Assembly: GCA_024704765.1 (NCBI GenBank)
Contig: JAKMXF010000119.1
Span: forward strand, 1 to 18,980
Direction: 5' to 3'
Length of the DNA stretch: 18,980 nucleotides
Source: Oopsacas minuta
Lineage: Eukaryota > Animalia > Porifera
Positions 1 to 18,980 of this stretch are shown here, piece by piece (the first letter of the stretch is position 1; each line of letters begins with the position of its first letter). Made by a program: the position numbers and the translations under genes. The notes under the pieces are model-generated. The model saw nothing but the letters and a program-made list of their open reading frames with translations, was not told the origin of the DNA and ran no database searches.

Positions 1-131
1 TGTCCAGACTAATTGCCATCCATGGTCCAGAATTTGAATAGAGTGCCATTGCCTTAGTGTATAGAATGCTATGATCTAGCTAACAGTCCCAAAATATATC
101 CATTAGATAAATAGTACATCAATTAGGAATT

Positions 132-565
132 ATAAATATTAGAAAGAAGTGTTTTTAATGTTTCTATGCTGGGAATTCTTACATGATCAGAAAGAGAATT
201 CCACAAACGCGGGTTAGCACTTGAAAACGTACGTTCACTACACTTCTTCAACTTATCTCTAGGTTTACGTAGTAAATTTGTTTGTGTGGTAGACCTTAGA
301 CTGAGTACTTAAAGAAGTGTTATCAGTTGACTGAAGTATGTCGGATAAAGCCCATAAACTATTTTTAATGTGATGAGCAGTATTTTGTAGTCTACTCTAA
401 CTCTGACAGGTAACCAATGTAAATTTTTAAGTATTGGAGTTATGTGGTCTCACTTCTTCGCTCCAGAAATTAAACGAGCTGCAGCATTTTGTATACTCTA
501 GTATATTCAGTTCTTGTGATGTAGAGAATTACAGTAATCTATTCGACTGTAACCGTTGGCGTATA
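132..565 (-). mobile_element. Decayed L2/CR1-clade LINE, reverse transcriptase C-terminal fragment
   Basis: Minus-strand translation gives SRIDYCNSL...QNAAARLISGAKK*DHITPILKNLHWLPVRVRVDYKILL...RTFSSANPRLWNSL, the typical CR1/L2 ORF2 tail, with stops. Only the SRIDYCNSL..QNAAARL part survives in the duplicate (about 16629-16730). Confidence 0.85.
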
Positions 566-1442
566 GTTTAGGGGGGAAGGGGTTGAACTTGACTAAATAC
601 ATATATCGAATATGCCGAATCCGAATTTCATACTTTTGAATTAATCATATGAAATTTATTTGTTGTTTTATGAATATCAAATAAACAAATAGTTGAAATC
701 TTAAAATCGAGCTTCTAAGTGCCAAGTCCCATGCAAACATAAAGTGTTCGCAAGCGCGCAGCGGGAGCAAGCGATGCGGATCATTTCGATATAATAATTC
801 AATTTGATTATTCGACCTTTTTCAGTCCTAGAATCTATGAAAATGCATATTTGTAATCCTTTGTGTACAATTAAATACTTCGTTGGGATATTGCTGGGCC
901 TGGATATAACAACCACATTAAAGTAAATATACATATGAGTTTTATAATTTTCGCTCCCCTTGGAATTTCAAGAACTCTTGGCCCATCTGTAACTCAAGAA
1001 ATAGCCAACTTTTGTATTACAAGTTTTTCATATTTTGCATAATACTAACTATAGGTCATTTTATATATATTTTCACTTTGAGATGAAAGATTCCATATTT
1101 AACGTTCTACAAGGAATCTAAGAATGACATTCTTTACCAAATGCATATTCACTAGACACATCTTTTGACACATTCCTGAAATATGTTAACATATAATGGT
1201 TGCTCATGTATTACTCAACAAATATGCAACACATTTTTCGGGAAAAAATCGCCATTCTTGCTAGAGTTTGTTATATCGGCTAATGTATCAATTCTCAATA
1301 GTCCGAATTCCACAATTGCTGTTAGTTAATAAATTCTATATTTACAGCAGACTCCGCTTAACAGGGTTACATTGGGACCATTTTGACCCAATTAACCGAA
1401 ATATAGGTGTTGACGCGATTAACCGGTGCTCTAGTGTATAGT

Positions 1443-1449
1443 TATATAA
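1443..1449 (+). promoter_or_regulatory. Candidate TATA box upstream of gene A (also 17404-17410 for A3)
   Basis: TATATAA about 60 bp upstream of the ATG, conserved in the duplicate and absent upstream of A2. Weak evidence in AT-rich DNA. Confidence 0.25.
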
Positions 1450-1507
1450 TTATGTTTAGTAATCTAATTTCTTAATTTTCTTTGAAAAAGTTGATTTAAC
1501 AATTAGC

Positions 1508-2986
1508 ATGGGAACTACACAGTCTATTCCAGCACATAGAAGTTTTATACTTATTGGGGAATTGGCTAATGGTAAAAGCACTTTGGGAAATCTAATACTA
1601 GGAGGAGGAGTTAATGCTCCATTTGATATACATAAGATATACATGCCAGCCTGTCATACAAAACATACTCAAACATCAGAAACTACTATTAAATCTAGCT
1701 TGATATACGGTGACAAATTTCCAGAGGAAGACACTCGGATTCAAGTTGTTGATCAACCTGGCTTAGGTGATCCCAAATATAGTTTGGATAAATACAGCCA
1801 TTTCCTAATCAGATGCTTGAAGGAATCGAATGCTGAGATTTCTACAACATTCATAATTACCATCAAAATGAGTTTAATATATTTTACAGAAAAATCAGCT
1901 TCAGAACTGTTTGATTTAGCATATTTTATGTCAAAGTTTAACTACAACTTCTTCAGTAATGCTATTATTGTATTTACACACATTGATGAAATTCAACTGG
2001 GAGAGGGAATTGAATTGAATACTGACACATTGAATACAAAACTAATGGAAATCATGACTCGAAAAAGTTGGAAGCAATTATCCGAACTTCTACAGCGAGT
2101 TAATAACAGATATATGTTCGTAAATGCAATGAACAGAGAACCTGGTTATCGTGAAGAGATTCTACAGAAACTGTTTGAACTTTCTAAACCTGTTGTGAAG
2201 GCTACATTCCATGGAAGTACAGGCTTTACATGTGAAGACTTGCAGACACTATTCAAAGATAACAGCTGTGATATATCACATCCCAAATGTCACCTACAGT
2301 GTACTTTTTGTGATTTTCAATGCACACAGGACAATCCTAATTTGGAATCATTTATCTCTAGAGTAAGACAATTAACACACGGTATTTCTGTGATTGTACT
2401 CCTAATAAATCTTAATAATGATCTGAGCGAGCAGTCATTGAGGTTAATAACTGGATTGCCTGAATATTATAAGCTAGGAGGAGATGGAGAGAGTGAATTT
2501 TGGAAATACACATTTCTCTTGTTTAAGTTTGAAGCAGAACAGGAGGATCCAATTGGATATATTCATAAACAATGTGAGAGATACGGGTGTATCAGAGAAT
2601 TATATGAGAAATCTGGAAAGAGAGCTACATGGGTGACTGAGCATATGACACAAGATCAATGTATACACAAGATTCTAGAAATATCACAAATTATCAAGCA
2701 GAATAATGAAGGGAGAGAATACATAGATGTAGAGATAGTTAAGAAAATGGAGGAGAAGATAAATAAGTTGAGAGCCAAGCCTCCTCCAAAGGGTGCTGAT
2801 GCTCCAGTGTCCTATACAAAGATATTTGCATATGTTGCATTGAATGTGCTCGTATTAGGGGTATCAGCATCTATGGGGAATCCACAACCTATGACGAAAT
2901 ATTTGTATTCACCTCCTCCACCACCTCCGAGGAATATTGATGACAATGAATTCAAGGAATTCATCGAACATTTCAATAAAGATTAA
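1508..2986 (+). CDS. Gene A: AIG1/GIMAP-like GTPase with tandem degenerate AIG1 domain, N-myristoylation motif and C-terminal hydrophobic anchor (492 aa)
   Basis: MGTTQS (G2/S6); G1 GELANGKST; G3 DQPG; G4 FTHID; RYMFVN. A second domain after LSKPV has a dead P-loop (HGSTGFTC) but AIG1-like strands GISVIVLLI and FWKYTFLLF. Hydrophobic IFAYVALNVLVLGVSA at about aa 439-454; PPPPPP at aa 469-474. Confidence 0.85.
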   Translation: MGTTQSIPAHRSFILIGELANGKSTLGNLILGGGVNAPFDIHKIYMPACHTKHTQTSETTIKSSLIYGDKFPEEDTRIQVVDQPGLGDPKYSLDKYSHFLIRCLKESNAEISTTFIITIKMSLIYFTEKSASELFDLAYFMSKFNYNFFSNAIIVFTHIDEIQLGEGIELNTDTLNTKLMEIMTRKSWKQLSELLQRVNNRYMFVNAMNREPGYREEILQKLFELSKPVVKATFHGSTGFTCEDLQTLFKDNSCDISHPKCHLQCTFCDFQCTQDNPNLESFISRVRQLTHGISVIVLLINLNNDLSEQSLRLITGLPEYYKLGGDGESEFWKYTFLLFKFEAEQEDPIGYIHKQCERYGCIRELYEKSGKRATWVTEHMTQDQCIHKILEISQIIKQNNEGREYIDVEIVKKMEEKINKLRAKPPPKGADAPVSYTKIFAYVALNVLVLGVSASMGNPQPMTKYLYSPPPPPPRNIDDNEFKEFIEHFNKD

Positions 2987-3952
2987 TTATTTTACATATT
3001 TTTTCCCAATGTGCATTCATGAATTTTATTTTATATTATTTAGCCTAACAGGTATATTACTATTGACTAATAATTATTCCTTACTTGTAGTACTTGTGTA
3101 TAATCTGTCACTACACGGAAATGGGTATTATTACTTATATATTGAACATTTCTCTTAATGTAATTGTATTGAATATTATTCTCAATTAAGTTTTTAGGAA
3201 ACATTTCAAATTTTCTATGCTATCTAGTATTTTGTGTAAGTCTGAACTTAGTACATTTGGTGCGTTCATTCCATCGGTCGTTTATGACTTTATATTGTAT
3301 AATACTCACCAAACTATTTGTATATTTTTTCATATGAAGACATTTCCTGCCTTTTTAGGTCAAAATACTTTGATAGTGCTACACATTGATTACATAGTTT
3401 CTTTAGTTGGTGTTTGCTTTATTGAGTGTCGAGATTTTCCCAAATACTGTATTCATTTTACAGTAGTGTCGATGTTCCACAATTCGCTCCACGGCATTTT
3501 CACTATTTCAGAGGTATCCAGCGTTTCTATTCCTCAATGAGGTAGATTGCTTTGACAAACTACCTCACATTCGCATGATTTATCGGGAGATGCCGGTACA
3601 TCATCTATGTAAGATATACGTGGATAAACCGTCTCAGAGATGCCAATTCTATAGGCCTTTTGACTCTCATGGATAAATGTCAAAGAATTTGAGTGATCTC
3701 ACGATTGAATACTAAATTCTGATAAATTGTAGCCGTTCTCACAAGTACTCATGGATTCTTGAGATATCAGATTGGCATCTATATCTATCTATGTAGAATT
3801 GTAGATGTATCTCAGAATCTTCCGATAATAACATAGGGACTGATTTAATGGAATTCCATATATGAATTTGTGAAGTTGATTATCAATGAGTACCTATGTA
3901 TAGGGATTTACATGGCATTGTTATGATTGATCAGTTAGTACGAGTTTTCAAC

Positions 3953-3976
3953 GATTACATGATTACATGATTACAT
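3953..3976 (+). repeat. (GATTACAT)x3 tandem repeat
   Basis: Three perfect 8-mers. A reverse-complement partial copy TGTAATCATGTAATC lies at 6938-6952. Confidence 0.9.
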
Positions 3977-4261
3977 GAAAAGAAATAGTATTTATTGCTA
4001 ATTATCATATATAGCCCTCCAACATGTGGAATGTTTTTCAAAGTACAACTTTGAAATAGAAATACGTACACAATATCCATATCTACGGGAGGCCTAGTAA
4101 ATCTCCACTCCTACAACTCGAGGAGTCCCTAACATTATCTGATTTACGATATGTCTGGAACGAAATAGTTATAATTATAGTGGAACACTCGGTATATGTT
4201 TTTGAATTTATATCCAATTTCAGAATTTACCTTAGCATACAAGAATAGCTTTAAGGTTTAG

Positions 4262-5578
4262 ATGCAGGTAGATAGGAACTTAATATTAATCGGGGCTGTA
4301 AACTGTGGTAAGAGTGTCCTTACAGATTTTATAATCGGACAAGAAGAAGTGAGAAGTATTGGAGGTAGAGAAGTGACAATTTTGTCTCAAGGCAAACCAA
4401 GTTCTATTCTAAGAATATTTGAAACTACTCCAGAGAATAGAAAAGATGTTTGTTTAGAAATTGTGAGAAATCAAACAGTTGATACTTGTTTTGTTGTTGT
4501 TATTGATGTGACTAAAAGTGATGAGTTTGTAAACGAGTTAGTCAGATTGAAGGAATTGTCTGAGCAGTTAGCTGAGTGGTCTTATTCGTTGTTTGGTAAT
4601 TGTTTTGTTGTATTTACTCATATTGATGAGTTGGTTGATGGAGTTGATAAGCAACAGTTTGTAGACAGAGAATTCGGAGATATATTATGTCTAGTGGATA
4701 GGAGATGTGTATTCATTAACTCTACTCTTAGGACACAGGAGAATAGGAATAGGTTGTTAGATGAATTGATACATCTGTCTAAACCTGTTTTGAAGATTCT
4801 TTGTTATGGAGACATTCAATTTCCTGGCGAAATGATACAACAAATTATTGAAATTCCTGACAATTCCTCACTCCTGGAAGAATTAGGACTGCGTCTCTAT
4901 TTTCATCCAGACCTAAGTAAGGGTGATAAATATCGCGAGTTTGTGTTAGAGCCACAGGTATCAAGCATAATTGGACTGCCTGATGAGGTCGGTAGAGGAG
5001 TTACTGTTATCGTTATTCTTGTTACGTTGACTGAAGCATACTGTAAAGATTATGAAATTTTGATTAATCGCTTACCAAGTACACATGGATTAGATGTAAA
5101 CTCTGAGAAATACTTTTGGGACAGGGTGGTTGTTCTCTTCCGAATAATCGGAGGAGACTTCAAGGAAATTTTCGAACACACAATTCATAATAATCCTGCA
5201 GTCATGGCCCTGATGATACGAACAGGTTGGAGGTATACTCACATATCCCCTATCGTCCGCGACAATGAATTTCTTCAAAAATTCATTCCATTATGTCAAC
5301 AGGTTAAAAGAGAAAATAATTTCAGACAGTTTATTGGAGGGAAAAATATCATAGAAAGAGCAACACGAGATATTTCATTGAGAAAGAAGGAATCATCAAT
5401 AGTGAGTAGGATATACAAATTTGTGTGTACACATCCAAGAAAGATATTTACTACACTACTTGCCTTGGGAATACTTCCATTCGTATACAGGTTAGCTTAT
5501 GGATCAGCAAAGATGCTCTTCAAACGGTTAGTAATACGCAATTTCATGAACCCAGCAGTTAATTTCAATTATTGTTGA
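4262..5578 (+). CDS. Gene B: divergent tandem AIG1/GIMAP-like protein, probable pseudo-GTPase with C-terminal hydrophobic segment (438 aa)
   Basis: G1 GAVNCGKS; G3 position reads IFETTPE (no DxxG); G4 FTHID; RRCVFIN; the same LSKPV junction as gene A. Second domain GVTVIVILV / YFWDRVVVLF / GWRYTHI parallels gene A. Hydrophobic IFTTLLALGILPFVY at about aa 395-409. Confidence 0.8.
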   Translation: MQVDRNLILIGAVNCGKSVLTDFIIGQEEVRSIGGREVTILSQGKPSSILRIFETTPENRKDVCLEIVRNQTVDTCFVVVIDVTKSDEFVNELVRLKELSEQLAEWSYSLFGNCFVVFTHIDELVDGVDKQQFVDREFGDILCLVDRRCVFINSTLRTQENRNRLLDELIHLSKPVLKILCYGDIQFPGEMIQQIIEIPDNSSLLEELGLRLYFHPDLSKGDKYREFVLEPQVSSIIGLPDEVGRGVTVIVILVTLTEAYCKDYEILINRLPSTHGLDVNSEKYFWDRVVVLFRIIGGDFKEIFEHTIHNNPAVMALMIRTGWRYTHISPIVRDNEFLQKFIPLCQQVKRENNFRQFIGGKNIIERATRDISLRKKESSIVSRIYKFVCTHPRKIFTTLLALGILPFVYRLAYGSAKMLFKRLVIRNFMNPAVNFNYC

Positions 5579-5863
5579 TTTCAATTTACGCATGTTACTT
5601 TGTTTATTTGTAATCATGGAAAGATAGGGATTGGCAACTCCCGGCCGCGGAAATCGTTAGAAACGTGCTTGCTGTAACTGTAGACATGGCCTACTAAAAT
5701 ACAGCTATACATGCTGGCAACTCAATAAAAACATATCAGTTCATTTTAATAATTCTCATAAATGAAAATTTAGTCCTCTAATGTTTGCGAATAGAACTTT
5801 TTGGGTAAAATATGTCCAGTCGACAGACTGGTAGTGCAGCTCGGTGTTATTGGTTTGTATTTT

Positions 5864-5971
5864 CAGGTAATGAAGGCTAAAGAACTTCAAGTTGAGAATA
5901 GAAGTATTCGTGCATACCATTCAACTGCGAATGGATTGGTCGAAGCTCACAGTAAGATTCTCAAAATGTGA
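5864..5971 (+). mobile_element. Short relic of an LTR-retrotransposon-type integrase core
   Basis: Translates to QVMKAKELQVENRSIRAYHSTANGLVEAHSKILKM*, resembling the AYHPxxNGLVER motif. Nothing else from the element is recognisable. Confidence 0.45.
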
Positions 5972-6809
5972 GGTTCCAATTATCATATTTATCTCTCTAA
6001 TAATGTTTATGTAATGTGGCTCTCACAATTAAGGATAAGTAGATCTATTCCAGTTAAGTCAGTAGTAAGGGTTATTTGCGCTATCTGTTGGGGCAATCTC
6101 AGTTTTTGCATATTACATGTAAGCGAGAGGACTAGTATCTGGCAAGCTCTGGCCCTGGAACTTGGGTTTGGTAATTCGAATTTTGGTTAGACACAATAAA
6201 ATGTATTATTGTCGTATAGGAAGTTATAGTTAGTGAGTCAATTAGTCATATTATTTTTTCCAAATATTTGTGGAATGTGAGTTATGTGGTTTTCACACCT
6301 TTTCCCACTGTTGTACTATAGTTTACATCTCGTCATTATTTCTAGCTCGATATATGAAATGTATTATCGTTGAATACAAATTCACATACGTATAGTGAAT
6401 CTGTGGGTTATGTTTGTTCACCCATAGCAATCTATACACTAGCCAATGGCGCAGGCTATTTTGTAGGACCAGAGATTGGTTAAACCAGTTAGGAATTATG
6501 CTGGAGGCCATGGCTGAAGTATATATTTCAGAAACAATGCACTTTGGGCCGAATGAATGCATTAGATACATAAAATAAAATTTTTCTCAATATTTGCCAA
6601 TTTATCCGCCAAATTATTGCTTACTAAGAAATATATTGTATTAGTTGTAAGTTGTAGGGGGCAATCTGATCAGCTCATGTGAGTCATGTCAGATAAGCTG
6701 CTCTCCCAAAGAGTTTCGAACTTGGCTATCAAATTCCTTGTCCAGTTTTTGTTTATTATATTATGTATTCACTATTTTTGCAATTTTTAACTTGTTTAAT
6801 ATGCGATTA

Positions 6810-6934
6810 CAGTGTAACCTCGATTATCCGGATATGGCCCCTGGTCCCAGGTCCTATTCCACTGGGCATAAACGTCCTCGATTGCTCGGAGGTTTTAACA
6901 CTCCCAACGAGTCAGGATAATCGAGGTTGCACTG
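6810..6934. mobile_element. 125-bp Tc1/mariner(pogo)-type MITE
   Basis: TIRs CAGTGTAACCTCGATTATCC / GGATAATCGAGGTTGCACTG (19/20 match). TA on both sides (6808-6809, 6935-6936). Confidence 0.9.
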
Positions 6935-6974
6935 TACTGTAATCATGTAATCAAAAGTTGATTTAACAATTAGC

Positions 6975-8174
6975 ATGGGAACTACACAGTCTATTCCAGC
7001 AAATAGAAGTTTTGTACTTATTGGGAAATTAGCTAATGGTAAAAGCACTTTGGGAAATCTAATACTAGGAGGAGGAGTTAATACTCCATTTGATATACAT
7101 AAGACATACATGCCAGCCTGTCATACAAAACATACTCAAACATCAGAAACTACTATTAAATCTAGCTTGATATACGGTGACAAATTTCCAGAGGAAGACA
7201 CTCGGATTCAAGTTGTTGATCAACCTGGCTTAGGTGATCCCAAATATAGTTTGGATAAATACAGCCATTTCCTAATCAGATGCTTGAAGGAATCGAATGC
7301 TGAGATTTCTACAACATTCATAATTACCATCAAAATGAGTTCCATGTATTTTACAGAAAAATCAGCTTCAGAACTGTTTGATTTAGCATATTTTATGTCA
7401 AAGTTTAACTACAACTTCTTCAGTAATGCTATTATTGTATTTACACACATTGATGAAATTCAACTGGGAGAGGGAATTGAATTGAATACTGACACATTGA
7501 ATACAAAACTAATGGAAATCATGACTCGAAAAAGTTGGAAGCAATTATCCGAACTTCTACAGCGAGTTAATAACAGATATATGTTCGTAAATGCAATGAA
7601 CAGAGAACCTGGTTATCGTGAAGAGATTCTACAGAAACTGTTTGAACTTTCTAAACCTGTTGTGAAGGCTACATTCCATGGAAGTACAGGCTTTACATGT
7701 GAAGACTTACAGACACTATTCAAAGATAACAGCTGTGATATATCACATCCCAAATGTCACCTACAGTGTACTTTTTGTGATTTTCAATGCACACAGGACA
7801 ATCCTAATTTGGAATCATTTGTCTCTAGAGTAAGACAATTAACACACGGTATTTCTGTGATTGTACTCCTAATAAATCTTAATAATGATCAGAGCGAGCA
7901 GTCATTGAGGTTAATAACTGGATTGCCTGAATATTATAAGCTAGGAGGAGATGGAGAGAGTGAATTTTGGAAATACACATTTCTCTTGTTCAAGTTTGAA
8001 GTAGAACAGGAGGATCCAATTGGATATATTCATAAACAATGTGAGAGATACGGGTGTATCAGAGAATTATATGAGAAATCTGGAAAGAGAGCTACATGGG
8101 TGACTGAACACATGACACGAGATCAATGTATACACAAGATTCTAGAAATATCACAAATTATTAAGCAGGAATAA
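6975..8174 (+). CDS. Copy A2: AIG1/GIMAP-like GTPase, truncated at 399 aa by a +1 frameshift; restored frame runs to 8370
   Basis: About 11 aa differences from gene A over 399 aa. An extra G at 8168-8169 (AAGCAGGAATAA versus AAGCAGAATAAT) creates TAA 8172-8174. Removing it gives NNEGRECIDIEIV...SYTKILTNIALGVFFYYIFCQICSCYRPN* ending at 8370. Confidence 0.8.
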   Translation: MGTTQSIPANRSFVLIGKLANGKSTLGNLILGGGVNTPFDIHKTYMPACHTKHTQTSETTIKSSLIYGDKFPEEDTRIQVVDQPGLGDPKYSLDKYSHFLIRCLKESNAEISTTFIITIKMSSMYFTEKSASELFDLAYFMSKFNYNFFSNAIIVFTHIDEIQLGEGIELNTDTLNTKLMEIMTRKSWKQLSELLQRVNNRYMFVNAMNREPGYREEILQKLFELSKPVVKATFHGSTGFTCEDLQTLFKDNSCDISHPKCHLQCTFCDFQCTQDNPNLESFVSRVRQLTHGISVIVLLINLNNDQSEQSLRLITGLPEYYKLGGDGESEFWKYTFLLFKFEVEQEDPIGYIHKQCERYGCIRELYEKSGKRATWVTEHMTRDQCIHKILEISQIIKQE

Positions 8175-8979
8175 TGAAGGGAGAGAATGCATAGATATAG
8201 AAATTGTTACGAAGATGGAGGATAAGATTAGTGAGTTAAGAGCCAAACATCCTCCAAAGGGTGCTGATGCTCCAGGCATGTCCTATACAAAGATATTGAC
8301 AAATATTGCATTAGGCGTATTTTTTTATTACATTTTTTGTCAAATATGCAGTTGTTACCGACCAAATTGAATATTTGGCAGTGCCAAATTGAGCAAGGTT
8401 ATTCTTATACAAAATTTGAAATTAAATGTTATGGTTTACTAACTAACATATTTTGAAAATTTCAAAGGTATGTTTTATGGTCTGCTAAAATAAATGATGT
8501 TGTATCTAGATTAAGAAATAATGTAGTACACGTATGTCTAGAAACTCTATAAATTTTCATGAATTAGTTGGCCAGTTGATTAAAATGGTAGATAGCTAGT
8601 TGATTGAGGTGGTTTTTACATTACTATCTGTTCTCGCATACGATAAAGTGTCTGTGACACCTCGAGTTGCATTTAACTTGCTTTCGTTTGCACTAGCAAG
8701 TCTTGGTCCGGCAGTTATCTTGCATTGACATGAGACGCACGGTGTAACCCCTGCCTCTACAGTGTTCAATCCAGGATTTACTTTTGGAGGAAGGTTGTCA
8801 TTATGGGCTACGCTATAGATCTCTGACTATTCTTTCGTTGTATTTATCCCATGCAAATATTTTGTGTAATTAAGATACTTCTTACTTATAAACAATCATA
8901 ATTTCAATATGAATATTTTAGGAAAATCTGTGTTAATTAACAATCCACAAGATTTAAGCTTGAACCTCACAATACTATT

Positions 8980-10256
8980 CTATTCTACGGGTCTTTGCCC
9001 TTCATAATGATCAACAAATTTCTCCAACATATCATTCGTTAGGAGATCAAGGCCTTCAACGCATATGCGCATCGTATGTTCAAGCGTGCCCTCGCCCATC
9101 TGCTGCGGAGTCTTGTTATTATTCGTTTCATACTGCTAAATGTACGTTCAACAGTGGCTGTTGTTACTAGTAAAGCCTGTAGGCCTCTACTATTGCAGCT
9201 AAATTTTATAAGTTTGGAAATGCAATCGAAATGTCTCCGCTATTGATCAATTTCGATAGTACATCCTGCAAAGATCTATTCTTGAATTGCTTCTAAATTA
9301 TCCGCCGAAACATTTTCCATTCTGCTTCAGTTTCCTCTCCATTAATGTCTGGTTGTGACACCATCATCATCACCAAAGCTGACATGTTATATAACACTAC
9401 ATTGATTTATTAGCATCTACATCTTTTCCATACCATAGTTAGTGATAGTTGAAGTTCGGTTTTAGGAGATAGCGAGGGTCCGGAACGGACATAGAAGAGA
9501 CTAGATAAGTGCACTCCCTTCTTTTTCGGATATTGTCAATCACACTTTGTATATATGGCCGATACACTGTCTGAAGAAATTGAATTTTTTCCTCTTCCAT
9601 GATCACAATTTGTTTTCCACCAAGCTGAGTATCATCTGTAAAAACGAAAGAATGGTTCTTGAACCAGGTGGTGCTGTTTACTATTTCTTTAGTCTCTGTT
9701 AGTCTTTCAGTGGTACTATTGACCATTAATTGCACAGCTCCAAAGTCAATCGCTTTCCCCTGTAAAATCCTTGTAACTTGACAACTGTATCGAGTACATC
9801 TGATAGTATATAGATACAAAGTACAGTTTTGTATTTTGACAAGAGTGTCGCAATTCCATGAGCTTCTGCATCACAAGTTTCATCATAAATCTCTTCAAAT
9901 GTGCGTACCAAGCTGGGATACTCCGTCGCACAACACACACGGCTCTTTCACGTGCGAGCAATAGAGTATTAAAAGGTTTTACCATTTTAATCTCAGGAGA
10001 CTGGAGTTCCGCTTGGGTCAGTGAAAGTTTTTCTGCTTTCTTGGGAGAATAATGGAACGCTTTCCAGATTTTTAACATTGTAACTAAACTCTCATTATTT
10101 GTACATGTTCTCCACAAGTATTGACAGCAGCAAGTTGAAATTTATGGGACCTGTAGTGGATATAAATTGCACTTCTTGCAAGTAGTAATCTCAGACGCCT
10201 TAGAATACCACTTATATGGCCAGACATTGTATTAGTACCATCATTGCCAAGGACGG
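8980..10256 (-). mobile_element. Decayed hAT transposase relic, ZNF862/ZMYM1-like
   Basis: Fragments GNDGTNTMSG, YIHYRSHKFQLAA (CxxH mutated), YSPKKAEKL, EAHGIATLL, and a dimerisation domain VTTATVERTFSSMKRIITRLRSR...EHTMRICVEG. Many stops and frameshifts. A possible terminal CAGTGTTC lies at 8760. Confidence 0.85.
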
Positions 10257-10269
10257 CTCTCTCTCTCTC
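10257..10269 (+). repeat. (CT)6C microsatellite at the junction of two TE relics
   Basis: CTCTCTCTCTCTC lies where hAT similarity ends and integrase-like similarity begins. Confidence 0.8.
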
Positions 10270-10890
10270 ATGGATATCGTTAGGGTAGAGAAGCTTGTCA
10301 GTGCCGCAGGGTGTTAAGTTAGTGTAGTTGAATGCTGGCAGATTGTTCCATGTGCAGTCCCTATCTGGAAATCCCCTCCATCCAGTACACATCCGTAACG
10401 GTACTAATGAGGCTGTTGGGACCAATGCTAGCCCTGGGTAAGGAATGGCATCCTCACATTATCCCCTTTCAATAGTCTTGCTACGTTTCATACTAGACTG
10501 TATCATGTCAGCTCCTTGCTTTCTGAGTGCTCATCAGCTTCTTTGACGGAGCTTCTCAGTATTTCGCGCTTTCCTGCAGTACTCATCACGTGCACAGAAG
10601 TACTGTACTGGAGTCTTACCGTACACGTCTAGTCGGTCCAGGCAGTCAGCATGAAATGGATCCAGTTTACAATGGCTGCAACTCACTGTACAGTTGTCAT
10701 CATCTATTACACAGACTAGACAGGGAGGATGTTAATATAAGGTGTAACTTGTCTGCAGGGGTACAGTAAGGTTGTAGGAATCGTCATCAAGATCGTCGTT
10801 GTGGCTCATGAAATACTCGTACACCCCTGTCACGTCCCCCATGACTGAGCTCGTGATGGGCTGCCACTAACGTATCCCACAGGTCTTCGG
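10262..10890 (-). mobile_element. Decayed KRBA2/SCAND3-like (Ginger-type) integrase relic with PHD-like finger, catalytic core missing
   Basis: EDLWDTLVAAHHELSHGGRDR (HHCC N-terminal half), then CLVC..CSHC..FHADC..FC..C, ALRKQGADMIQSS, KGDNVRMP and FQIGTAHG. Several frameshifts and stops. Confidence 0.6.
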
Positions 10891-11349
10891 ATATATGAAT
10901 AAACTGATGGAAAATATATGTAAATTACACACATTCTTTACAATCTGAGCATTAAAATAGTAAGAAAAGACCGTTTCGACTATAATAAGCAGTGGTGGTC
11001 TGAGTATCAGCCACTGCCTTTTGGCTTATACTTTAAGTGATATTAATCATTTGTCTAACGACTAATCATTTTTTATCAGGTAGCAAAGTGACCCAGAGGC
11101 CTTAGCTACTCTCCCAGTTTCACATTTTTGAGCACTGTCTATTCGGTTCTCTCGTCACATTACATTAGCATTCGGAACTCAAATTGAGATCACCAAACAC
11201 AACAATTAATTAGTACTCAAGAAGCATATATGTCATCAGGGGGATCGGTAGTATGTGGGAGTCACCACTACTACTGGGTAGAAGGGCGGACGTGTATGAG
11301 TAAGAATTTTCAGTTACGACCAGTAGGGTGCCCTAACCGGATGCTGGTA

Positions 11350-11835
11350 ATATTCGGTTGGAGGAAAACATCATGCTCAGTTATTTCTGTATTTTCTAAT
11401 ACCGAGATTGATGATTCTAATTTAGTGACGGCCTCTTTGATATTTTCTAGAACAATATTGGATTCAAATAACTCAGGATTAGTGTAGTTTAGAATATCAC
11501 CAATTAAGATTTCAATTTGTCGTATATCGGTTAATCGACTGAGACTCAAAGGAACTTGGTGTTGGCAACAAACTGCTGAAACTGTTAAATCTGAATGAAT
11601 TGATAAGGTAGATAGAATATGTATAGACTCATTGGCGAATTCCAGCTGTATGATCTCTAAGGTATTGCTAGAGGAGTACCAGGTCGCCCAATCTTGGTTA
11701 AGGTGTAACTCTGGCAACTTAATTTAAGATCCTCAAAATTCCCCAAACCGAACCGTAATGAATCTTGTTGATCTTGTATAATGCTATCATGAAGAGCTTT
11801 AGCAAAGTTTTCCTCTTCCTTAGATTCAAGATTTA
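11350..11835 (-). pseudogene. Relic of a THAP/P-element transposase linker region
   Basis: NLESKEEENFAKALHDSI...LSIHSDLTVSA...RLTDIRQIEILI parallels SLDDKEERRIQEAY...SISIDVNFYCKA...NDIRSLENII in the plus-strand element. Frameshifted. Confidence 0.55.
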
Positions 11836-13405: not shown

Positions 13406-15098
13406 TTAATTTTTCATGTTCAATATCCTATAAACGAACACCAGTTTAGCCGCCTTCTCAATTCCAAGTCGGTTGCGAGTTTTTGAGTGTATATATCCAA
13501 ATGTAGAAAATATACGTTCAATTCCTGCACTTGAAGCAATTGCGGTGAGAAGTTGTTCAGCAACTTTAGTAATATCTTTCCCCAACGTTCCATGCATTGA
13601 TGCCCACCAGCAAGCTGGCGTAATATTATCAACTACATCGTCACTAAACATGTAGGATTTGAAAGGATCATATCCTGCTTTGAACTGCAAGACAGTCGCC
13701 ATTGCATTTGGACAATGCTGATGAATATATTCCATTGCATCGGTAGCTTCTTCTCAGTGAGTTTTCTTCCTCTATACCTTGGGTCTATTAAGTTCGCAGA
13801 ATAGTGTGCTGGAGAAATAGCTTGGGCAGCTCTTTCGTCTACTTTTCTTAGTACATGTGCCGGTTGCTGTGAACTTAGAAGATCCTCATAAAGTGTTTTC
13901 CATACTTCAACTGTATCGCTAATTATAGCATTTTCCCTTTGAATTCTATCTAGAGCAACTGAAATTGGTTTTAATCTAATAAAGAGATCTTCAGCGTTAC
14001 GTTTGATAGAATAATTCTTAACTTTATTACCAATGTTCGAATTTATCTCATCACGATATTCCTCACAGACCTGTACAAGGATATGCCAGTTAGAAATATA
14101 GCTATTCAAACAGTCCGTCAAAGTATTCCATCTAATTTCATGTGGGATAACAAGAGAATTACCACCAGCTTGCTTGTGTCTAGCTGCAGGTAGATGTGTA
14201 TGTCTAAAATATTTGACTATCTGGACAACTTGTTCTTTTATCCCAGTAATCTGTACATCTTGTGCTAATAGGTTCAACAAATGAGCAGAGCATCCGTATG
14301 TCAATATTTCATTCGGTATCTTTTTTTGTAAATCTCTTCTCATTTTTGCCATATTGGCTGCGTTGTCAGTTACAACGTTACGTACATGACATCTAAAATT
14401 TATCTCACAGGAAGTAATAGCATCTGCAGCAAGTTCTGCCAGATATTCTGATGTGTGACTATGTCCAGAGGTATCAATTGTCTCAGTAAGGAAAGTCTCT
14501 CCTTTGTCAGTTGTAACACTCACACACACGACAGGTTCATTATGTACGTTACTCCATCCATCCAGTGATAAGGAGACTGTCTTATCCTCCAGGGTTTTTC
14601 TGCATGTATCCAAGAGAGATCCTTGTACATTATTTAATAGTTTATTCCCTATATCATGGCGATTTGGTGGTATATAACCTGGCCGTAGCATCTTTATTAG
14701 TTTCATAAACTCGGGGTGTTCAACAGCTATAAAAGGCGTGTTAGTTGCGTAAATATAACGAGCAATTTGGAGATCCAGTAATTCTGCCTCTGATTTCGAA
14801 GTCTTCATGACATATTCACCGATATGAGTAATCCTAGGTCTTTTTTCTTTAGCAAAAAGACTTGTATCAGGCACTTCTCCACATAATGCAGTTGATCTGG
14901 CTACTAAATCAATTGATTCATTTTCAGCTATTATGGGATGGTCTTGCATGCTGCATGAAGAATAATGTTGCTTAAGGCGGTTGACCACCCCTGCATCTCC
15001 TTTTTGCAAACTTTACACCTTGCTTCCCAGCCAGCAACTCCTTCTGTCGTATACCGTTCGAAGTGGACCCATATATCATCTTGTTTCCTACCTGCCAT
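13406..15098 (-). pseudogene. hAT transposase (BED finger, DDE, dimerisation domain), about 564 aa after restoring two 1-bp deletions
   Basis: MAGRKQDDIWVHF..RCKVCKKEMQG(fs near 14990)VVNRLKQHYSSC; LSLDGWSN; VVTDNAANM; GCSAHLLNL; EIRWN; LTE(fs near 13753)EEATDAMEY; SSAGIERIFS. No in-frame stops in the restored frame. Confidence 0.93.
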
Positions 15099-16492: not shown

Positions 16493-18980
16493 TGTCCAGA
16501 CTAATTGCCATCCATGGTCCAGAATTTGAATAGAGTGCCATTGCCTTAGTGTATAGAATGCTATGATCTAGCTAACAGTCCCAAAATATATGCATTAGAT
16601 AAATAGTACATCAATTATGAATTATACATCCAGAAATTAAACGAGCTGCAGCATTTTGTATACTCTAGTATAGTCAGTTCTTGTGATGTAGAGAATTACA
16701 GTAATCTATTCGACTGTAACCGTTGGCGTGTAGTTTAGGGGGGAAGGGGTTGAACTTGACTAAATACATATATCGAATATGCCGAATCCGAATTTCATAC
16801 TTTTGAATTAATCATATGAAATTTATTTGTTGTTTTATGAATATCAAGTAAACAAATAGTTGAAATCTTAAAATCGAGGCTCGAAGTGCAAAGTCCCATG
16901 CAAACATAAAGTGGGATTTCAAGAACTCTTCGCCCATCTGTAACCCAAGAAAAAGCCAACTTTTGTATCACAATTTTTTCATATTTTGTATAATACTAAC
17001 AATAGGTCATTTTATATATTCACTTTGAGATGAAAGATTCCATATTTAACATTCTATAAGGGATCTAAGAATGACATTCTTTACCAAATGCATATTCACT
17101 AGACACATCTTTTGACACATTCCTGAAATATTTTAACATATAATGGTTGCTCATTTATTACTCAACAAATATGCAATACATTTTCGGGAAAAAATCGCCA
17201 TTCTTGCCATATCGAACTCACCTAGAGTTTGTTATATCGGCTAACGTATCAATTCTCAATAGTCCGAATTCCGCGATTGCTGTTAGTTAATAAATTATAT
17301 ATTTACAGCAGACTCCGCTTAACAGGGTTACATCGGGACCATTTTGACCCAATTAACCAAAATATAGGTGTTGGCCCGATTAACCGGTGCTCTAGTGTAT
17401 AGTTATATAATTATGTTTAGTAATCTAATTTCTTAATTTTCTTTGAAAAAGTTGATTTAACAATTAGCATGGGAACTACACAGTCTATTCCAGCAAATAG
17501 AAGTTTTATACTTATTGGGCAATTAGCTAATGGTAAAAGCACTTTAGGAAATCTAATACTAGGAGGAGGAGTGAATACTCCATTCAAAATACACGCACAC
17601 CTGAAAAGATCATGTTACACAAGAGGAACTCAAACTTCAGAAACAATGATCAAATCTAGCCTAATCTACGGTAACAAATTTCCAGAGGAAGATATTCGGA
17701 TTCAAGTTGTTGATCAACCTGGTTTAGGTGATCCCAGATATAGTTTAGAAAGATATAGCCAATTTCTAATCACATGCTTGAAGGAATCGAATGCTGAGAT
17801 TTCTACAACATTCATAATTACTATCAAAATAAGCTCTGTTAAACTAGATAACGAAACAGTTTCGGCTCTATTTGATCTGTCATATTTATTGGGCCAATTC
17901 CATTACAACTTCTTCAGTAATGCTATTATTGTTTTCACTCATATCGATGAGATACGGTTGAGAGATGGTAACAAAAACATAGACCAAATAATCACAGATA
18001 TTACAGAGAATGAACAGTGGATTCGTTTAACAGAAATCCTACAGCGAGTTAATAACAGATATATGTGTGTAAATGCAATGAACAGAGAACCTGGTTATCG
18101 TGAAGAGATTCTACAGAAACTGTTTGAACTTTCTAAACCTGTTTTCCAGTAGCGTCGGTGTCCGACAATTCGTTCCACGGCATTTTCACTATTTCATAGT
18201 AAACCCCAGGCTTGCCGTAAGGATAAAATCCCATCCATATTCATATCCAGACCTTTTGGACGTGGAAATTCATAGATATTGATTTTTTCTAAAGCCTGTT
18301 GGTGTTGGGTAGACGTAGATGCTCTAAGCCTGGGGCATAGACTCATTGCTACATGCTTCTTGGTGGACTTCCAGTTTCAGTGTTTGATACAGAGGGAGGC
18401 CCTGGGTTATCCCCCACCTGAATTGATAATGAATATACTTTTTGCATTATTTGAAATGGGTATATGGTACTTGGCCTGATCCTCCAGCAAAAGTGTCTCT
18501 ATCATACCCTGAATGTGCTCATGTCGCTCTTGTATATCTATTTTCATGAGGTCAAATTGTACCACACAAAGGTTATGGAAGATTATTCGCACCAGAGGTA
18601 CCTAGCATTTCTATTCCTCAATGAGGTAGATTGCTTTGACAAACTACCTCACATTCGCATGATTTATCGGGAGATGCCGGTAAATCATCTATGTAAGATA
18701 TACGTGGATAAACCGTCCCAGAGATGCCAATTCTCTAGGCCTTTTGACTCTCATGGATAAATGTCAAAGAATTTGAGTGATCTCACGATTGAATACTAAA
18801 TTCTGATAAATTGTAGCCGTTCTTACAAGCACTCATGGATTCTTGAGATATCAGATTGGCATCTATATCTATCTATTAGAGTTGTAGATGTATCTCAGAA
18901 TCTTCCGATAATAACATAGGGACTGATTTAATGGAATTCCATATATGAATTTGTGAAGTTGATTATCAATGAGTACCTAT
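16493..18980 (+). repeat. Segmental duplication, copy 2 (partner 1-3897)
   Basis: See blocks under copy 1. This copy lacks 135-461, 747-960 and 2195-3457, and has an extra 398 bp (18197-18594) plus a 14-bp extra near 17208-17221. Confidence 0.95.
17469..18152 (+). CDS. Copy A3: single-domain myristoylated AIG1/GIMAP-like GTPase (227 aa)
   Basis: MGTTQS, GQLANGKST, DQPG and FTHID are intact. It ends LSKPVFQ*, with the last codons and stop supplied by sequence homologous to 3458-3466. Confidence 0.75.
   Translation: MGTTQSIPANRSFILIGQLANGKSTLGNLILGGGVNTPFKIHAHLKRSCYTRGTQTSETMIKSSLIYGNKFPEEDIRIQVVDQPGLGDPRYSLERYSQFLITCLKESNAEISTTFIITIKISSVKLDNETVSALFDLSYLLGQFHYNFFSNAIIVFTHIDEIRLRDGNKNIDQIITDITENEQWIRLTEILQRVNNRYMCVNAMNREPGYREEILQKLFELSKPVFQ

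Follow-up and report, generated by a model that had tools for sequence, protein, structure and literature searches.

What does a glass sponge gain, if anything, from keeping two dissimilar GTPase-like genes side by side? The window analyzed here is the whole of contig C119 (18,980 bases) from the glass sponge Oopsacas minuta, whose genome measures 61 Mb. It carries on its forward strand gene A (1508-2986), a complete single open reading frame (ORF) for a double-domain GIMAP/AIG1-like GTPase of 492 aa, and gene B (4262-5578, forward strand), a paralog of 438 aa with degenerate switch regions and a predicted C-terminal tail anchor. B corresponds to the annotated gene LOD99_11184 (P0001) and is 100% identical to it over aa 1-382, while the annotated 3' end differs. 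A sequence-only reading of this DNA had taken the two genes for an active GTPase and its pseudo-GTPase partner, and had likened a variable A and its partner B to paired immune genes. From the comparisons described below, we conclude that A and B are an ancient co-inherited gene pair of glass sponges, recognizable by homology, architecture, motifs, adjacency, and order.

Two old paralogs with one layout

The region of A and B has a G+C content of 34% (32-44% across the window), and in DNA of such low G+C chance does not account for open frames as long as 492 and 438 codons. The two products are old paralogs: BLASTP aligns them at 24% identity over 311 aa (E 6e-22), and profile-profile comparison by hhalign matches their N-terminal domains at E 5.6e-29 and their C-terminal domains at E 1.3e-27. 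The proposal that A and B diverged anciently and kept the same layout, with an LSKPV junction and an FTHID motif in each, is thus borne out, positions included. Sequence and models together describe each protein as a G domain, the LSKPV linker (aa 225-229 in A, 172-176 in B), and a second AIG1-like domain devoid of a P-loop. This second domain follows LSKPV at aa 229-425 of A (2192-2782, forward strand); its homolog occupies aa 177-360 of B (4790-5341, forward strand).

AlphaFold2 models of A and B had a predicted local distance difference test score (pLDDT) of 74 and 78 and a predicted template modeling score (pTM) of 0.72 and 0.74, respectively. When the N-terminal domains were searched with Foldseek, human GIMAP7, GIMAP2, GIMAP4, GIMAP1, and GIMAP5 were closest, followed by Toc34 and small GTPases. 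The B model matched GIMAP7 and GIMAP2 best, and VIA-align placed the A model with GIMAP7 (Z 17.5) and GIMAP4 (Z 15.6). Der/EngA proteins, which have two G domains, could be aligned over about 400 columns with both models. Comparison of the N and C domains of the same protein by hhalign gave no significant match (E 0.0023 and probability 13% for A, E 0.38 for B), and the AIG1-like nature of the second domain hence rests on structure and feature searches and a weak hidden Markov model (HMM) match: residues 232-425 of A matched AIG1/GIMAP clusters of the ESM Atlas with a template modeling score of 0.68-0.80 by query and a language-model feature score of 0.92, and the HMM match was to residues 129-204 of GIMAP7, the G4 region.

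Against the Pfam AIG1 profile (PF04548, cutoff 27 bits) A scores 64.4 bits, and two further copies of A in the window, A2 and A3, score 57.2 and 51.9. The protein begins with MGTTQSI (1508-1528, forward strand), a match to an N-myristoylation-type motif from which lipidation is predicted. A orthologs in five other assemblies are 49-60% identical to A, and the pattern MG[^EDRKHPFYW]xx[STAGCN][^P] is present in eight of 10 A orthologs, with G2 nearly invariant. G22, K23, and S24 of the P-loop GELANGKS (G1; 1556-1579, forward strand) are nearly invariant as well; D82, P84, and G85 of the switch II motif DQPG (G3; 1751-1762, forward strand) are invariant among 20 sequences. In switch I (G2) the nearly invariant T51 falls within a low-confidence loop (residues 41-51, pLDDT <50), and the T, H, and D of FTHID (aa 156-160), a G4-like motif with a putative role in base recognition, are invariant across the family. 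The alignment of the A family shows MGxxQS, GKS, DQPG, and THxD as conserved. Toward the C terminus the orthologs have only a weaker amphipathic segment.

B starts with MQVDRN and is without the myristoylation motif of A. Its P-loop, GAVNCGKS (4292-4315, forward strand), is intact, with K17 invariant and G16 and S15 nearly invariant in 15 sequences of B and its B' paralogs. In place of DxxG there is FETTP (4418-4432, forward strand; F-E-[T/P]-x-x in the family, E54 invariant and F53 nearly so), and HMM alignment sets the RiFEta of B on WDTAGQ of Ypt51, with the conserved Glu at the position of the DxxG Asp. The P-loop Lys is separated from the G3 position by 37 residues in B versus 59 in A; the switch I region is 22 residues shorter than that of A and has no conserved Thr. 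In FTHID (aa 118-122), T119 is invariant and D122 nearly so, and the His varies in B' paralogs. Near the C terminus lies the hydrophobic segment IFTTLLALGILPFVYRLAY (5444-5500, forward strand), a predicted tail anchor whose position is conserved in the alignment. Indeed, the C-terminal 19-mer has a Kyte-Doolittle value of 1.5-2.5 in all B orthologs and is followed by 8-25 more residues.

B scores 16.7 bits against the Pfam AIG1 profile, below the cutoff, and a PDB sequence search with the B profile returned nothing significant (best, Ypt51, E 0.27). Homology to A and the modeled fold, rather than the profile, place B in the family as a divergent AIG1/GIMAP offshoot. The sequence-only reading had rightly seen that B lacks the myristoyl motif and DxxG and has a shortened switch I. 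Its term "pseudo-GTPase" goes too far: B has lost DxxG and its switch I segment, but the Walker A lysine of GxxxxGKS is intact, THxD is kept, and a Glu is conserved at the DxxG Asp position, a combination that does not look like a fully dead GTPase. Judging from this motif pattern, loss of the switch I segment and of the DxxG glycine with retention of the P-loop Lys and THxD, B probably binds guanine nucleotide but would be impaired in switching and hydrolysis of its own.

The B-then-A order in related sponges

Word-index searches yielded 17-18 relatives each for A and B, all in O. minuta or in assemblies of the European Nucleotide Archive (ENA), with several A-like and B-like matches on contigs of the same length; the contigs of these relatives were retrieved and every ORF on them was classified. 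Five other assemblies (ERZ25071281, ERZ25072730, ERZ25766962, ERZ25069837, and ERZ25072740) contain B orthologs, and all 13 examined have an A ortholog downstream on the same strand, across a gap of 127-1382 bp. In the window, B is followed by A2, 1396 bp apart, so that order, strand, and tight spacing are retained in 14 of 14 B copies. These copies form alternating B-A arrays (four times in locus L001, twice in L018) or single pairs in unrelated surroundings, and within one genome B orthologs occupy at least four distinct contexts. Look-ups that started from A, and so could not favor B, showed B directly upstream at two of three loci (three of four A genes). Two housekeeping genes nearby, for a tRNA methyltransferase and SNX17, consist of one exon and share 71-74% identity with their O. 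minuta orthologs; we infer that the related assemblies are other glass sponges. Adjacency at other loci and in related genomes, which the sequence-only reading proposed as a check on its A-B module, is thus the rule for B. The module itself stands as a conserved two-gene pair, with the order corrected to B then A. By this order, the canonical partner of B in the window is the downstream A2 and not the intact A upstream.

A maximum-likelihood tree separated a "live" superclade, whose members (A, A', and others) invariably carry GKS and DxPG, from a "degenerate" one (B, B', and a class C), with support of 100/99. The A and B subtrees showed an identical branching order with starred support. Consistently, the two genes of recently duplicated units have similar synonymous divergence (dS): 0.125 for B and 0.142 for A in L001, and 0.107 and 0.122 in L018. 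Ratios of nonsynonymous to synonymous divergence (dN/dS) were 0.21-0.45 for B and 0.08-0.22 for A, so both genes are under purifying selection and B evolves faster; in old duplicates (dS 0.5-2) both members remain intact under such selection. Only one decayed pair was found, at L016:7959-10885. It was copied recently from the L017 B-A pair, to which it is 90-92% identical. There, both B and A carry a frameshift close to the P-loop codons, that of B within a poly-Gly run. In the other assemblies, A and B are present in a 1:1 ratio. Strictly defined, B is single-copy both in the window and in the whole O. minuta genome. The B ORFs, 424-438 codons long, are uninterrupted in all orthologs, and 47 alignment columns are invariant across the family, among them K17, E54, and T119. 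Because of this purifying selection and these invariant columns, B is on sequence grounds a maintained gene and not a pseudogene.

B also appears to be transcribed. We took run X4 of the source study to be RNA solely on account of one GT..AG joint and the way its depth is distributed; of the five runs considered, none is recorded as RNA. The X4 data are word depths of contigs, a measure that cannot give expression levels. Depth reached 10,000-19,000 over B and 1,600-6,300 over A, compared with 17-190 over the spacers and zero at 6425-6822. One X4 contig has the joint 5525>5866, which removes a GT..AG intron (5526-5865, forward strand) that contains the stop-codon region of B. The frame across the joint was derived from the splice-site bases and from frame-by-frame translations past the acceptor: in the frame of B the product continues to ...LFKR and then stops, which gives a single-intron form of 422 aa with the tail anchor retained. 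RNA-seq was included in the O. minuta genome project (PMC10280926). The LOD99_11184 model has two introns (about 5408-5490 and 5526-5866) and a soluble end of 44 residues instead of the conserved tail anchor. X4 shows only the second of these introns, and the upstream one conflicts with the contiguous ORF of all orthologs; going by these sequences, the 3' end of the model is probably wrong or represents a minor isoform.

A spliced leader or operon was considered as the basis of the tight B-to-A spacing. The candidate leader, the loose X4 end before 4258, was rejected: it resembles the genomic sequence just upstream and is thus an allelic or indel variant. In Aphrocallistes vastus, a trans-spliced leader is found on about 4% of long reads (PMC10282587).

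Copies of A in the window and the wider family

The sequence-only reading had described A as copied and truncated and B as present once in the window, and this description holds. A2 (6953-8312, forward strand) lies downstream of B, in the canonical place, and is 97.1% identical to 1486-2841. A +1 insertion ends its ORF (6975-8174) with a stop at codon 400, and the 3' end of A2 bears no relation to that of A. With a dS of 0.027 relative to A and a tract confined to 1486-2841, A2 looks like the result of recent gene conversion or duplication. A third unit (16493-18980, forward strand) is a segmental copy of 1-3897 with deletions, which runs to the contig end and stops there 364 bases before the point where B starts in unit 1. 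It contains the truncated A3 (17469-18152, forward strand; 227 aa), shortened by a deletion that matches 2195-3455 of unit 1 and removes the C-terminal half. Non-coding flanks of the third unit are 97-98% identical to 1-3897, whereas A and A3 coding sequences are 85% identical, with blocks down to 73%. The A-A3 dS of 0.565 (dN/dS 0.32) rises locally to above 1, against flanks that differ by 2-3%. Divergence this patchy indicates gene conversion or mosaicism, with an older paralog as the suggested donor, and not positive selection. We conclude from these sequences that the extra A copies are decayed or mosaic duplicates and not a diversifying sensor repertoire.

Several other features of the O. 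minuta sequence were observed. The spacer between A and B contains a dispersed repeat (3787-4080) with copies of 70-85% identity on at least 10 other contigs. Contig C10 (51953-56016) carries A-derived fragments with internal stops, 92% identical to A over aa 155-411 and 69% over the C-terminal tail, and also a 98% identical copy of the window spacer 3500-3848; the fragments look like pseudogene debris of the A unit of the window. Between the B-A2 pair and the A3 unit there is a remnant of a hAT-type transposase (13406-15009, reverse strand) split over two overlapping ORFs, one of 458 aa with DUF659 (6e-16) and one of 109 aa with a hAT C-terminal dimerization domain (1.4e-08). A block at 9439-11717 (reverse strand) has a G+C of 0.40-0.44 and four overlapping ORFs of 113-135 aa, for which a Pfam search gave no match, and could represent either the remains of a mobile element or a gene missed by annotation.

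Pairing of unlike members extends beyond A and B. Class C, the lysine-less relative of B, has its P-loop lysine replaced (GxxxxGM or GxxxxGI, e.g., GDHNCGMN), and in other assemblies a C gene is followed by a live member. At L021:7466-13086 (ERZ26869290), for example, a C gene with GDVNSGIV precedes, by 207 bp, a live AIG1 gene whose product starts with MG, and another live AIG1 gene, divergently oriented, lies upstream. The aconitase gene of this assembly is called in several short pieces, which suggests that it contains introns. Mixed clusters were observed as well, with the order B'-C-A'-C-B-A at L015:213-11800 and live-A'-C-B'-C at L022:2012-10181; the short C-class ORFs in them (230-304 aa) encode only the second domain and a strongly hydrophobic tail. 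Heterotypic neighbor pairs are thus a general habit of the family, and the degenerate member is usually upstream. Contig C133 of O. minuta carries distant A-like members.

An exhaustive search of 1.84 billion cluster representatives with the B profile returned 108 proteins at E <= 0.001, 29 of them at E <= 1e-30. Ten clusters were looked up. Four had names, all fish GIMAP8-like or AIG1-type, and matched in the second domain only (E 5e-17 and weaker); the other six, which include the stronger matches checked, are ENA or Logan records without names. According to a 2022 survey, GIMAPs had gone undetected in sponges (PMC8857920), and the O. minuta genome paper makes no mention of GIMAP or AIG1 (PMC10280926). 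Single-exon AIG1 genes in large tandem clusters have been reported in glass sponges in the A. vastus paper, which names a syntenic O. minuta gene on scaffold 133, a designation that we do not equate with contig C133 (PMC10282587). Links of the family to immunity are known from vertebrates, plants, corals, and molluscs, and in a demosponge a response of GIMAP genes to microbes was described in 2024 (PMC11229196). Neither the double-domain layout nor the recurrence, in several subfamilies, of a degenerate gene followed by a live one is described in the literature that we searched.

Possible function of the pair and comparison with known systems

What might the pair do? A tail anchor and lost switches in B, against a myristoylation motif and full GTPase motifs in A, look like a division of labor. 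By analogy with the systems compared below, we give roughly even chances to a membrane-based partnership of A and B, of the regulator/effector or scaffold/effector type. In this reading B would reside in the membrane through its C-terminal tail as a probably nucleotide-bound, non-switching scaffold or regulator; A, with all catalytic motifs, would be a lipid-anchored GTPase recruited by its myristate; and B would recruit or restrain A through G-domain contacts. Tail anchoring of B, lipidation of A, and physical contact between the two are what we infer here. Prediction of a complex of A 1-425, B 1-385, and two GTP (two runs) returned 0.00, "no answer", and counts neither way. From the associations of the family, a defense role of the pair is plausible but conjectural.

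Several observations weigh against a functional pair. Tandem-born paralogs stay adjacent by inertia, and segmental duplication copies neighbors regardless of their function. A and B each hold a degenerate second AIG1-like domain of their own, a possible built-in partner. Locus L020 has an intact, selectively constrained A (dN/dS 0.17 relative to the L002 ortholog) and no B; it is syntenic with L002 of a closely related sponge, at a nucleotide identity of about 80%. Between the tRNA methyltransferase gene and the A ortholog, where L002 has B (L002:9479-12494), L020 has a 620-bp gap (L020:7380-8001) in which no B remnant was detectable, and B copies are carried at other loci of the L020 genome; cis-adjacency is therefore not obligatory for A. 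In O. minuta itself, the only intact A sits upstream of B and the A2 downstream is broken, and three B' paralogs (contigs C116, C362, and C23) are followed by class C and not by a live GTPase. Finally, the RNA evidence comes from contigs of runs without a recorded library type. The A without B at L020 and the second domain of each protein would suit old tandem paralogs that are adjacent only through tandem or segmental duplication and work singly, each with its internal degenerate domain as partner, as would the single-exon AIG1 tandem clusters known in glass sponges (PMC10282587) and the presence of other classes in mixed clusters (L015 and L022). We regard mere legacy of this kind as a serious possibility, although the less probable side of an uncertain matter. 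It has to contend with the retention of order, strand, and spacing in every B copy, in several unrelated contexts and among species whose housekeeping proteins have diverged to 71-74% identity; with the integrity of both members in old duplicates; with the loss of both genes, not one, in the single decayed pair; and with features of A and B that complement each other.

A sensor/helper arrangement along the lines of the sequence-only reading, taken here as a fast-diversifying, copy-variable A with B as its constant partner, has in its favor the three A-type copies beside one B in the window, A fragments on other contigs, the patchy A-A3 divergence, and the links of GIMAPs to immunity and to the microbe response of a demosponge (PMC11229196). 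Other observations speak against it. A and B duplicate together and are 1:1 elsewhere, A and not B is the slower-evolving member, the additional A copies of the window are broken or truncated, their divergence is of the kind left by conversion or mosaicism, and the genes are oriented head to tail. Neither the variable A with a constant B nor the likeness to paired immune genes is upheld, and we consider such an arrangement highly improbable. Less credible still is the idea that B is a pseudogene, a copy of an A-like gene in decay and without expression, the outcome that the sequence-only reading had named as contrary to its proposal. The lost DxxG and switch I segment and the sub-threshold Pfam score would fit decay, but the ORF of B is open in all orthologs, dN/dS is 0.21-0.45, its invariant columns include the P-loop lysine, and run X4 has high-depth contigs and a spliced joint on B; we see next to no chance for this explanation.

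A more specific version of the regulator/effector reading can be drawn from the IRG proteins of the mouse, among which membrane-bound IRGM proteins keep the GKS IRGs GDP-bound (PMC3681737), and the effector Irga6 is myristoylated (PMC2581590). It is a speculative one, and we think it unlikely: a "guard and effector" logic of the IRGM/GKS kind would have evolved independently in glass sponges within the GIMAP family. The tail-anchored, switch-less B and the lysine-less C would mark the organelle membranes of the sponge itself and hold myristoylated active effectors (A) in check, so that assembly of the effectors would be confined to membranes without guards, for example those enclosing engulfed microbes. 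The gene of each guard would directly precede that of its effector, and the two might be co-transcribed.

Immunity in plants and in several animal groups has been linked to GIMAP/AIG1 GTPases, whose working is poorly understood. A two-gene unit that is fixed in an early-branching animal lineage would offer a simple natural system for the control of an active GTPase by a non-switching paralog, the same question that is open for GIMAP2/GIMAP7, GIMAP5/GIMAP4, and IRGM/GKS. If the pairing is genomic inertia only, the finding shrinks to a catalogue entry on a lineage-specific GIMAP expansion.

The closest known counterparts are vertebrate GIMAP2/GIMAP7 and GIMAP5/GIMAP4; in structure, A and B resemble AIG1-type G domains most. 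Hydrolysis of GTP by GIMAP2 is stimulated by GIMAP7, and C-terminal membrane anchors occur in some GIMAPs (PMC8201404). One partner is anchored in the membrane by its C terminus and hydrolyzes poorly (the anchor of B being predicted); its catalytically competent counterpart acts on hydrolysis by way of a G-domain dimer, as described for GIMAPs (PMC8201404); and the genes are clustered in the genome. Unlike these GIMAPs, A and B continue into another AIG1-like domain, one without a P-loop. Myristoylation is predicted for A, whereas GIMAP7 is soluble; the motifs of GIMAP2 are canonical, whereas B lacks DxxG as well as the switch I segment; and the sponge genes form a fixed head-to-tail two-gene unit that is duplicated as a unit, with A-B binding presumed.

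In the mouse IRG system, membrane-bound members with a non-canonical nucleotide site (Irgm1-3) regulate canonical, partly myristoylated effectors such as Irga6, and class C, the sister of B, has a comparable GxxxxGM or GxxxxGI P-loop. The sponge genes belong to another GTPase family (AIG1), and B keeps GKS instead of GxxxxGMS, with its defect in the switch regions. IRGB10 is among the fold matches of A only at rank 50, the best being a GIMAP. Because B has GKS and the best folds are GIMAPs, the resemblance is one of functional analogy and not of membership. Targeting of pathogen vacuoles belongs to the IRG side of the comparison, A being known here from sequence and models, and we know of no interferon system in sponges.

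GIMAP8 likewise has several AIG1-type domains in one polypeptide, and the fish GIMAP8-like proteins are the only named matches of the B profile outside sponges among the clusters looked up. The domains of GIMAP8 are described as potentially GTP-binding (PMC4201521), whereas the second domain of the sponge proteins is without a P-loop, and these proteins have predicted lipid or tail anchors. The AIG1 expansion of A. vastus resembles the O. minuta locus in its single-exon genes and tandem clusters; the report on it (PMC10282587) describes the expansion, whereas the degenerate/live pair, the B-type class, and the double-domain architecture are added here.

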